Shown in pieces: positions 1 to 5,326 of a DNA stretch of 5,763 nucleotides (position 1 is the stretch's first letter; each line of letters starts with the position of its first letter). The notes beneath the pieces are model-generated. The model saw only the letters and a program-made list of their open reading frames with translations. It had not been told where the DNA came from and searched no databases. The position numbers and the translations under genes are program-made. The stretch is from contig NW_003314719.1 in NCBI RefSeq assembly GCF_000143415.4, positions 1 through 5,763 on the forward strand, in the 5' to 3' direction. This DNA is from Selaginella moellendorffii (Eukaryota; Plantae; Lycopodiophyta).

Positions 1-838
1 ATTTCGTCGCTCCCCCGGCCCGCACCATTGCGATGGGTTTGACGCTGGGTTTTCGAGCGAGTGGGCAACATCCATGGCTCGGTTTGCGGTGGGACTTGAA
101 CCGTTGGAAAGCTTGCGTGAGTCCACCCGTTTCCACAGAAACGGATCCCGATTTCGTTGCTCCACCGTCCCACACCATTGCAATGGGTTTTGTGCTGTTC
201 CCGTTGCCATATCTCGTGGACCGTGGGCCCCCTTTCGCCCTTGGGCACATGGGAGCAACTGGGGCGGTGCGCGCAACTGGCCCATGTGGCCAAGTACATT
301 TTTCCATGTCCTGGGCGCCTGCTTTTGTGGTTTTTCCCACGGAAGAAGATGCGTCCCACGTGGCGATCCGTGTGCCCGCCCGCACTCCGGCACCAACGGG
401 GCCGGCCGGCGTGACGCCCCGGTCGCGGCCGTGCCAACGGATCGCGGGCCCCATGCGTGGGCTGCCGCCGGGAGTGCATCTCACTCTCGAGGAAAACACC
501 GCACTGGCGCTCGGGCCTGCACTGGAACGCGACCCCAGGAGCGCCGTGGCGAAGCCCGCGTCGAGGGCATCGATCCGAATTGGCTGGGCCCCCCATGCCA
601 TGCTGGCACCGTGCGTGCCTTGTCGAAAACGGCACACCCTTGCGACCGCTGGGCGAAAGGGGCAAACCCCGAGAGGTCCTTGCACCTCCTGTCACTGGAG
701 AGGGTGCCCCCCACGAACACGAACCCAACGGCGCCAGTCCCACGCGAAACGCACGCACGGTTCGCGAGAAAACGGCCCCCAACGCCCGCATTCTCCATTA
801 TTCCGAGAGAATATTCCCTCCACTACTTAAATTGTGCC

Positions 839-843
839 AAAAA
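839..843 (-). terminator. Pol III oligo(dT) terminator, TTTTT (also 2088-2092, 2465-2469, 3714-3718, 5227-5231)
   Basis: T5 on the minus strand directly follows the 3' arm of the terminal stem. Confidence 0.6.
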
Positions 844-859
844 GAGGTGGCTCCGGGTG

Positions 860-870
860 GGTCTCGACCC
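860..870 (-). promoter_or_regulatory. Internal B box, variant GGGTCGAGACC
   Basis: One mismatch to GGTTCRANNCC and to the GTTCGAGACC B box of vertebrate vault RNAs. Confidence 0.55.
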
Positions 871-914
871 AGGGACCTATTTGAGTGGACTTGTTTTTAG
901 ATTGGGGGTCTCTG

Positions 915-925
915 CCACTAGGCCT
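915..925 (-). promoter_or_regulatory. Internal A box, AGGCCTAGTGG
   Basis: Matches TRGCNNARYGG except for the first base and starts about +14 from the predicted 5' end. Confidence 0.55.
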
Positions 926-957
926 CTACCACCTCTCCGTTACATATTTCGTGTCGG

Positions 958-968
958 TTAAATTTATT
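958..968 (-). promoter_or_regulatory. TATA-like element AATAAATTTAA at -30 to -20
   Basis: An 11-bp pure-AT run in a GC-rich unit, at the position expected for TFIIIB/TBP binding. Confidence 0.45.
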
Positions 969-1145
969 GGGTTTGTGGGGGAGGGGGTTTAACTAGCAAA
1001 GGGCGATTATGGGGAGCGCTTAGTGCGATTAAGTGGGGCTTAAGTTGGGGCAATCGCGGCCGTCGGTGCGGTGGGGTGGTTGACCGGCGGCGATGAGTTT
1101 GACCGGCGGTCCCCGTGACACGTGGCTAGGGCTAGGGTCTGGATA

Positions 1146-1440
1146 TGGGTTTTGCGCGAGTGGGCAAGATCCATGGCTCGGTTTGCGGTGGGACTTGAAC
1201 CGTTGGAAAGCTTGCGTGAGTCCACCCGTTTCCACAGAAACGGATCTGGATTTCGTCGCTCCACCGGCCCGCACCATTGCGATGGGTTTGACGCTGGGTT
1301 TTCGAGCGAGTGGGCAACATCCATGGCTCGGTTTGCGGTGGGACTTGAACCGTTGGAAAGCTTGCGTGAGTCCACCCGTTTCCACAGAAACGGATCCCGA
1401 TTTCGTTGCTCCACCGTCCCACACCATTGCAATGGGTTTT
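1146..1440. repeat. Two-copy ~150-bp direct sub-repeat within each unit
   Basis: CCATGGCTCGGTTTGCGGTGGGACTTGAACC...GAAACGGATC starts at 1171 and at 1321. The core is identical and the flanks have diverged (gatctgga/gatcccga, ggcccgcacc/gtcccacacc). Confidence 0.95.
1191..1201 (-). promoter_or_regulatory. Perfect B-box consensus GGTTCAAGTCC in the sub-repeat (also 92-102, 1341-1351, 2817-2827, 2967-2977, 4066-4076, 4330-4340, 4480-4490, 5579-5589, 5729-5739)
   Basis: Exact match to GGTTCRANNCC. No convincing A box or cloverleaf is nearby. Confidence 0.4.
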
Positions 1441-2087
1441 GTGCTGTTCCCGTTGCCATATCTCGTGGACCGTGGGCCCCCTTTCGCCCTTGGGCACATG
1501 GGAGCAACTGGGGCGGTGCGCGCAACTGGCCCATGTGGCCAAGTACATTTTTCCATGTCCTGGGCGCCTGCTTTTGTGGTTTTTCCCACGGAAGAAGATG
1601 CGTCCCACGTGGCGATCCGTGTGCCCGCCCGCACTCCGGCACCAACGGGGCCGGCCGGCGTGACGCCCCGGTCGCGGCCGTGCCAACGGATCGCGGGCCC
1701 CATGCGTGGGCTGCCGCCGGGAGTGCATCTCACTCTCGAGGAAAACACCGCACTGGCGCTCGGGCCTGCACTGGAACGCGACCCCAGGAGCGCCGTGGCG
1801 AAGCCCGCGTCGAGGGCATCGATCCGAATTGGCTGGGCCCCCCATGCCATGCTGGCACCGTGCGTGCCTTGTCGAAAACGGCACACCCTTGCGACCGCTG
1901 GGCGAAAGGGGCAAACCCCGAGAGGTCCTTGCACCTCCTGTCACTGGGGAGGGTGCCCCCCACGAACACGAACCCAACGGCGCCAGTCCCACGCGAAACG
2001 CACGCACGGTTCGCGAGAAAACGGCCCCCAACGCCCGCATTCTCCATTATTCCGAGAGAATATTCCCTCCACTACTTAAATTGTGCC

Positions 2088-2138
2088 AAAAAGAGGTGGC
2101 TCCGGGTGGGTCTCGACCCATGGACCTATTTGAGTGGA
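2088..2138 (-). ncRNA. 3' half of the candidate Pol III ncRNA, cut off at the contig end
   Basis: Matches 839-889 with one mismatch at 2121, then switches to vector-like sequence. Confidence 0.55.
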
Positions 2139-2464: not shown

Positions 2465-2564
2465 AAAAAGAGGTGGCTCCGGGTGGGTCTCGACCCAGGG
2501 ACCTATTTGAGTGGACTTGTTTTTAGATTGGGGGTCTCTGCCACTAGGCCTCTACCACCTCTCC
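2465..2564 (-). ncRNA. Candidate vault-RNA-like Pol III ncRNA, full copy 2
   Basis: Identical by eye to 839-938. Confidence 0.65.
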
Positions 2565-3713: not shown

Positions 3714-3813
3714 AAAAAGAGGTGGCTCCGGGTGGGTCTCGACCCAGGGACCTATTTGAGTGGACTTGTTTTTAGATTGGGGGTCTCTGCCACTAGGCCT
3801 CTACCACCTCTCC
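3714..3813 (-). ncRNA. Candidate vault-RNA-like Pol III ncRNA, full copy 3
   Basis: Identical by eye to 839-938. Confidence 0.65.
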
Positions 3814-3878: not shown

Positions 3879-4142
3879 CGATTATGGGGAGCGCTTAGTG
3901 CGATTAAGTGGGGCTTAAGTTGGGGCAATCGCGGCCGTCGGTGCGGTGGGGTGGTTGACCGGCGGCGATGAGTTTGACCGGCGGTCCCCGTGACACGTGG
4001 CTAGGGCTAGGGTCTGGATATGGGTTTTGCGCGAGTGGGCAAGATCCATGGCTCGGTTTGCGGTGGGACTTGAACCGTTGGAAAGCTTGCGTGAGTCCAC
4101 CCGTTTCCACAGAAACGATCTGGATTTCGTCGCTCCACCGGC
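3879..4142. repeat. 264-bp local tandem duplication making one 1513-bp unit
   Basis: At the junction ...CTCCACCGGC|CGATTATGGGG (4142/4143) the sequence restarts at the position equivalent to 3879. This copy lacks one G near 4117 (agaaacgatc). Confidence 0.93.
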
Positions 4143-5226
4143 CGATTATGGGGAGCGCTTAGTGCGATTAAGTGGGGCTTAAGTTGGGGCAATCGCGGCC
4201 GTCGGTGCGGTGGGGTGGTTGACCGGCGGCGATGAGTTTGACCGGCGGTCCCCGTGACACGTGGCTAGGGCTAGGGTCTGGATATGGGTTTTGCGCGAGT
4301 GGGCAAGATCCATGGCTCGGTTTGCGGTGGGACTTGAACCGTTGGAAAGCTTGCGTGAGTCCACCCGTTTCCACAGAAACGGATCTGGATTTCGTCGCTC
4401 CACCGGCCCGCACCATTGCGATGGGTTTGACGCTGGGTTTTCGAGCGAGTGGGCAACATCCATGGCTCGGTTTGCGGTGGGACTTGAACCGTTGGAAAGC
4501 TTGCGTGAGTCCACCCGTTTCCACAGAAACGGATCCCGATTTCGTTGCTCCACCGTCCCACACCATTGCAATGGGTTTTGTGCTGTTCCCGTTGCCATAT
4601 CTCGTGGACCGTGGGCCCCCTTTCGCCCTTGGGCACATGGGAGCAACTGGGGCGGTGCGCGCAACTGGCCCATGTGGCCAAGTACATTTTTCCATGTCCT
4701 GGGCGCCTGCTTTTGTGGTTTTTCCCACGGAAGAAGATGCGTCCCACGTGGCGATCCGTGTGCCCGCCCGCACTCCGGCACCAACGGGGCCGGCCGGCGT
4801 GACGCCCCGGTCGCGGCCGTGCCAACGGATCGCGGGCCCCATGCGTGGGCTGCCGCCGGGAGTGCATCTCACTCTCGAGGAAAACACCGCACTGCGCTCG
4901 GGGCCTGCACTGGAACGCGACCCCAGGAGCGCCGTGGCGAAGCCCGCGTCGAGGGCATCGATCCGAATGGGCTGGGCCCCCCATGCCATGCTGGCACCGT
5001 GCGTGCCTTGTCGAAAACGGCACACCCTTGCGACCGCTGGGCGAAAGGGGCAAACCCCGAGAGGTCCTTGCACCTCCTGTCACTGGGGAGGGTGCCCCCC
5101 ACGAACACGAACCCAACGGCGCCAGTCCCACGCGAAACGCACGCACGGTTCGCGAGAAAACGGCCCCCAACGCCCGCATTCTCCATTATTCCGAGAGAAT
5201 ATTCCCTCCACTACTTAAATTGTGCC

Positions 5227-5326
5227 AAAAAGAGGTGGCTCCGGGTGGGTCTCGACCCAGGGACCTATTTGAGTGGACTTGTTTTTAGATTGGGGGTCTC
5301 TGCCACTAGGCCTCTACCACCTCTCC
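5227..5326 (-). ncRNA. Candidate vault-RNA-like Pol III ncRNA, full copy 4
   Basis: Identical by eye to 839-938. Confidence 0.65.

Follow-up and report, generated by a model that had tools for sequence, protein, structure and literature searches.

Is the tandem repeat in this part of the Selaginella moellendorffii genome an ordinary satellite, or is it an array of small RNA genes transcribed by Pol III? The latter had been proposed in an earlier note on this DNA, which read a segment of about 100 nt on the minus strand as a divergent vault RNA or, as its second option, as an undescribed small Pol III RNA. We analyzed the whole stretch of 5,763 nt (the window) and refer to the segment in question as the cassette.

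The repeat array and the cassette

The window is made up of 1249-bp units repeated head to tail and contains an N gap and a local duplication of 264 bp. Each unit has two subrepeats of 150 bp, and the units differ from one another by a few bases. No LINE is present in the window. In contigs from three public runs the unit is evenly covered (depth 28.6, 11.9 and 47.9), and the joint between two units is found in the contigs of all three independent runs. The repeat is therefore real genomic DNA, and an assembly artefact as the source of the 1249-bp unit is ruled out. Since the runs which show the repeat at a depth of 12–48 assemble into only 0.9–4 Mb of contigs in total, a high copy number of the unit is implied.

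Several parts of the window stand apart from the regular array. The duplication (positions 3879–4408) repeats in tandem the part of the unit upstream of the cassette, with the USE-like motif described below and one subrepeat, but not the cassette; its joint is absent from the contigs of the three runs, and it is thus a rare variant or an assembly error. At 2139–2168, directly before the N gap, the array breaks into 30 bases resembling a cloning polylinker, with a site order (SphI, PstI, SalI-like, XbaI) which we take to be polylinker-like. A plasmid search for a vector origin of 2141–2168 returned chance matches only, and the 30 bases are probably read-end junk in the assembly. In the GC-rich spacer there is an inverted repeat of 21 nt (81% complementary, spacer 41 nt) at 363–445 and in the corresponding copies. 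The GC-rich unit, which is not depleted in CpG, is more reminiscent of rDNA or 5S spacers than of transposon DNA that has decayed; within the cassette CpG is scarce (observed/expected 0.27, from very small counts). Of the ORFs across the repeat eight are absent from the protein collection and one was searched and has no homologues, so that they indicate no coding role and offer no route to related DNA. A TRIM of the Helenus or Cassandra type was rejected as well, as the unit has no LTR–interior–LTR layout and no 5S match and differs in sequence, when compared by eye, from the published Selaginella TRIM Helenus-1_SMo with its 120-bp LTR and 85-bp interior (PMC10886601).

Table 1. Features of the window and related loci in metagenome contigs. 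Positions relative to the transcript are counted on the minus strand from +1 = 938, the assumed start.
Feature	Position	Strand	Remarks
Repeat unit	1..1249		1249 bp, GC-rich, CpG observed/expected 0.97
Candidate Pol III transcription unit (cassette), copy 1	839..938	-	about 96–100 nt; from boxes, stem, terminator and shuffle test
AT-rich TATA-like box AATAAATTTAA	958..968	-	-30..-20
A box AGGCCTAGTGG	915..925	-	+14..+24; 10/11 to TRGYNNARBGG; followed by CAGAGA, like tRNA positions 20–25
B box variant GGGTCGAGACC	860..870	-	+69..+79; 9/11 to GGTTCRANYCY (consensus PMC7279448)
T5 Pol III terminator	839..843	-	+96..+100
Terminal stem, 5' arm	928..938	-	+1..+11; 11 bp
Terminal stem, 3' arm	841..851	-	+88..+98; overlaps the terminator
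tRNA positions 44–52	870..878	-	variable loop AGGTC and 5' strand of the T stem; in register with the T loop
Cassette copy, identical	2465..2564	-	sequence comparison
Cassette copy, identical	3714..3813	-	sequence comparison
Cassette copy, identical	5227..5326	-	sequence comparison
Fifth cassette copy, 3' half only	2088..2138	-	one substitution; ends before the junk and the N gap
USE-like motif CCCATAA	1007..1013	-	-75..-69; one per unit; meaning uncertain
Two 150-bp subrepeats per unit	1146..1445	-	upstream of the cassette, same strand; each with a perfect B box at 1201–1191, 1351–1341
Perfect B box GGTTCAAGTCC, then CACC	1191–1201, 1341–1351, 92–102 and equivalents	-	in each subrepeat
SINE-like heads, first listed group	L009 6458–6536, L011 757–836, L019 780–850, L023 96–167, L026 1079–1151		metagenome contigs
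SINE-like heads, second listed group	L010 199–273, L016 1115–1189		metagenome contigs

The minus-strand AT box at -30, the A box near +14, the B-box variant and the T5 terminator are all present where they had been described (Table 1), and the proposed end stem of up to 11 bp including G-U pairs was recovered with 11 of 11 pairs, G-U in three cases. Plant tRNA genes likewise have a TATA-like box, at -30/-24 (PMC7279448). The B box of the cassette has a G at tRNA position 54, which is outside the consensus, and an A at position 60. The four full copies (starting at 839, 2465, 3714 and 5227) do not differ from one another over a stretch that runs from 60 bases ahead of the start coordinate to 160 bases beyond it; among the copies in the window the spacer is equally uniform, and there is no conservation contrast between the two.

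The frequency of such a set of signals was determined with 5000 dinucleotide shuffles of the unit, on both strands and with thresholds chosen after seeing the element. What was scored are the features normally expected of type-2 Pol III genes in plants. The A and B boxes by themselves occur in 37% of the shuffles, together with a T4 in 5.2%, with T4 and an AT box in 0.24% and with T4 and a stem of at least 9 bp in 0.04%, and the full set of boxes, terminator, AT box and stem was obtained in 0 of the 5000 shuffles, albeit at these post hoc thresholds. One could still argue that the motifs are a chance arrangement within an ordinary satellite, pointing to how common the two boxes are on their own, to the post hoc choice of the thresholds and to a tRNA profile giving the cassette only E 1.4. 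The complete failure of the shuffles to produce the full set, and an independent match of tRNA letters in register (P about 5e-4, see below), largely refute this argument and make it a most improbable one.

Elements upstream of the cassette

The perfect B box of the subrepeats is found in 2.9% of the shuffles. About 50 nt before these B boxes there is nothing better than a weak A box, and the first T4 downstream is that of the cassette terminator, at a distance of 350–500 nt; judged from this layout they could be TFIIIC-only sites or belong to the start of a longer transcript. That the 150-bp subrepeat is a decayed copy of the cassette was considered and rejected, since 52 of 1000 shuffles score as well, its fold z is about 0 and it is off the tRNA register.

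The motif CCCATAA occurs once in each unit, where about 0.26 occurrences would be expected, and agrees with the USE consensus of green algae, CCCRTAA/ACCCATAA (PMC8287931), a consensus which may not be that of Selaginella. The unit could then be driven by a promoter with an upstream element (USE/TATA, type 3) or by a hybrid one, possibly with Pol II and with the internal boxes being secondary, as is known from plant genes for snRNA, 7SL or telomerase RNA. The motif, however, ends about 35 nt before the AT box, near the USE–TATA spacing of Pol II genes (32–34) and not at that of Pol III genes (23–24; PMC8287931), so that there is no USE 23–24 bp upstream of the TATA box as in type-3 genes. It also sits in a degenerate C-rich run, and the RNA has neither an Sm site nor a telomere template nor an Rfam snRNA match. 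Because of the Pol II-like spacing we regard an upstream-driven gene as only a minor rival and as decidedly unlikely. The C-rich run itself extends over 1001–1052 and consists, on the minus strand, of degenerate CCCCA-like short repeats with a period of about 12 which enclose the motif; on the plus strand the C-rich repeats and a GCTAGGG at about 1124–1137 are loosely telomere-like, with the exact TTAGGG absent.

Fold, vault RNA and descent from a tRNA

The minimum-energy fold predicted for the cassette RNA (-32.7 kcal/mol) is a three-way junction made up of the terminal stem, a long interrupted stem with an A/C-rich loop of about 25 nt and a hairpin over the B box. In the terminal stem all 11 positions are paired, ten of them at a predicted probability of at least 0.93; the folding z of the cassette overall is only -1.6. 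The earlier note had in addition drawn an inner helix between the GUGG at the end of the A box and the CCAC after the B box. The complementarity holds up (11 of 12 pairs), but the predicted fold disfavours the helix, with a pairing probability of 0.00–0.04 and an energy of -23.4 kcal/mol in the form drawn or -27.5 in its most favourable form, that is 5–9 kcal/mol above the best fold. These are values of a fold prediction for one sequence, the four full copies being identical and no homologue having been found.

This result bears directly on the vault RNA label. Like a vault RNA the cassette RNA would be about 100 nt long with a type-2 promoter and an oligo-U end, features which are common to many Pol III units and therefore not diagnostic, and its ends pair into a panhandle of 11 bp. 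Together with the A at T-loop position 60 and the GUGG/CCAC complementarity this could suggest a true divergent vault RNA, or a Y-like RNA, with a TROVE-domain protein (TEP1/Ro60) as its partner. The Rfam Vault model may miss divergent members. Nevertheless, an Rfam search at E<=10 of the whole window and of 800–1000 alone yielded chance matches only and none to Vault, tRNA, Y, 5S, SRP or snRNA, and the vault-type helix has a probability of at most 0.04. Moreover, a metagenome scan for an A box, a vault-style B box and a T run gave 27 loci which include tRNA-His, -Leu and -Arg genes and SINE-like heads and no homologue of the cassette; as the same B-box ending is thus found in ordinary tRNAs, the B-box variant is not diagnostic. 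Vault RNA genes are reported to be absent in plants and low-copy elsewhere (PMC11012908), whereas the window has five copies in 5.8 kb of a large tandem array with a high copy number implied, and published surveys report MVP, and with it the vaults, as probably lost in plants (PMC3762200; PMC12547018). We therefore do not retain the vault RNA label and consider this identity very improbable.

Two families of tRNA-derived SINE-like heads with the B box GGTTCGAGACCCAC were seen in eukaryote-looking metagenome contigs (Table 1); for the five that were scanned there was no Rfam match at gathering score. A further metagenome contig (L029, 234–320) has an A box, a U-rich middle, a vault-style B box and a T run and is unmatched in Rfam. 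Pattern scans of viral, metagenome and prokaryote sequences gave no cassette homologue matching beyond the pattern; what they returned were chance matches, true tRNAs or unrelated SINE-like heads.

Judged by its letters, the cassette appears to be a descendant of a tRNA and not a vault RNA. The nine bases ahead of its T loop match tRNA positions 44–52 in register with P about 5e-4 in a profile built from 50 tRNAs which had been fetched as neighbours only and not been selected by the cassette. Positions 20–25 of a tRNA are likewise matched in register by the six bases following the A box, with P about 0.03. Such in-register letters outside the A and B boxes are as expected of a tRNA-derived element. 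It is not a known tRNA gene, a possibility for which a scan had been proposed: ARAGORN found none, Rfam gave none at E<=10 and the cloverleaf is lost, with two of four pairs in the D stem, two of five in the T stem, no anticodon stem and 30 nt where a tRNA has 18. With tRNA genes and plant tRNA-derived SINEs the cassette has in common the A box, the B box and the letters of D loop and variable loop, and an upstream TATA-like box is likewise present in plant tRNA genes; unlike them it lacks the cloverleaf, and the window holds tandem copies only, with no A-rich tail and no dispersed copies.

As to the parent tRNA, a stretch of 21 nt agrees at 19 positions with eukaryote-type initiator tRNA-Met genes of giant viruses, tRNAs which had been fetched with a pattern built from the cassette. 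In this circular comparison initiator Met scores 34, His 30 and the best shuffle 36. Initiator tRNA-Met ancestry is suggestive, but circular and not significant against shuffles. The initiator tRNA-Met genes seen on the giant-virus or viral contigs L030, L034, L039 and L042 carry introns of 9–18 nt.

While the cloverleaf stems have decayed, the terminal stem is paired at 11 of 11 positions. This uneven decay suggests selection on the stem and the promoter and is the best hint of it, read from copies none of which has diverged enough to show covariation.

Transcribed gene or silent repeat

Seven runs, all of one species, contain the cassette; their contigs are DNA-like or unlabelled and none is recorded as RNA, and no sequence word of the cassette occurs in the RNA-type contig sets. 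In three runs the spacer and the cassette are equally covered, as expected for DNA, and there is no RNA-sized contig. Raw RNA-seq reads of one run gave 0 matches in 9.2 million, in a library unlikely to keep a 100-nt RNA and with no positive control. Of the idea that the apparent satellite is a gene array, the anatomy of a type-2 Pol III small-RNA gene stands (0 of 5000 shuffles); no transcript was found. The RNA tests are insensitive to a non-polyadenylated RNA of 100 nt, and the cassette may still encode an undescribed small Pol III RNA, the second option of the earlier note.

Our preferred reading, to which we give about an even chance, is that a tRNA gene or the head of a tRNA-derived SINE has become a stand-alone type-2 Pol III unit which is tandemly amplified and would be transcribed as an RNA of about 96–100 nt. 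The ancestral sequence would have decayed into this unit, been amplified in tandem with about 1.15 kb of spacer and then been homogenised. At each cassette TFIIIC would bind the A and B boxes and TBP/TFIIIB would assemble on the AT box at -30; Pol III would start near 938 and stop in the T5, giving an RNA closed by the 11-bp stem with an oligo-U end. This mechanism is established for TFIIIC, TFIIIB and Pol III in general (PMC7279448), and from the signals we infer that it operates at the cassette. Lacking D, anticodon and T stems the RNA would not undergo tRNA maturation, so that the primary transcript would be the product, probably folded as the three-way junction with an exposed A/C-rich loop of about 25 nt. 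Its dose would be set by the tandem amplification, as for a lineage-specific RNA of the OAX, PolIII/TAN or 4.5SH sort.

It is also quite possible that the cassette is a silent passenger or a DNA-level element, namely the pseudogene of a tRNA or the head of a SINE which has ended up within a satellite. It might be uniform by concerted evolution alone, be methylated and untranscribed, or serve as a TFIIIC-binding site only, along with the two extra perfect B boxes in each unit. Such a passenger would agree with the RNA tests, in which neither the RNA-type contigs nor the 9.2 million reads gave a cassette signal, with the non-consensus B box, with a cassette not conserved above the spacer and with extra B boxes that have no good A box, fold or nearby terminator; satellites from tRNA-like or SINE pieces are moreover known (PMC10702118). 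It accounts less well for an intact AT box and terminator and for an 11-bp stem which joins the presumed start with the terminator, the stems of the cloverleaf being gone, nor would it predict a unit without CpG depletion, and the RNA tests are weakened by the insensitivity already mentioned.

The preferred reading, a transcribed stand-alone unit, has parallels in known systems. Tandem repeats related to tRNAs are found in amphibians, namely PolIII/TAN (Hirt) of the newt, OAX (satellite I) of Xenopus and Rana/polIII, of which PolIII/TAN is transcribed in vitro (PMC10702118). Like the array described here they are head-to-tail repeats in which each unit has a single segment related to tRNA, and no SINE has been identified as their parent. 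The array differs in being from a plant lineage, in its unit of 1249 bp against about 250–360 bp for two of the amphibian repeats and in a cassette closed by its own stem and terminator and known from sequence alone; no homology is claimed. By its signals each head-to-tail repeat holds one Pol III unit, as in OAX, PolIII/TAN and 4.5SH. The rodent 4.5SH RNA (as also 4.5SI, and snaR of primates) is, like the cassette, small and lineage-specific with A and B boxes and a TATA-like box near -30; there are hundreds of 4.5SH genes, each in a tandem unit of 4–5 kb (PMC7279448), and snaR genes lie in tandem arrays (PMC3045588). 4.5SH and snaR, however, have been proven to be transcribed and go back to 7SL by way of B1/Alu, while the cassette looks tRNA-derived and is known as sequence. 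The array is thus best read as one which would work like the amphibian repeats, 4.5SH and snaR but is not homologous to them. In the literature searched we found no tandemly amplified Pol III RNA of the OAX/4.5SH sort for Selaginella moellendorffii, which is weak evidence.

Going further, the array might encode an abundant and functional, so far unknown plant Pol III RNA, born from a tRNA and converged on a closed stem like that of vault and Y RNAs, which would act as a protein-bound scaffold or, via its open 25-nt loop, as an antisense guide. This we regard as unlikely; if true, an abundant functional RNA would sit in a lineage thought to be without vault and Y RNAs. If the cassette is silent, the array is an ordinary tRNA-derived tandem repeat. 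If it is transcribed, it would be the equivalent in a plant of the lineage-specific Pol III RNAs that are amplified in tandem in amphibians, rodents and apes, and would show a tRNA in the course of becoming a new RNA gene.
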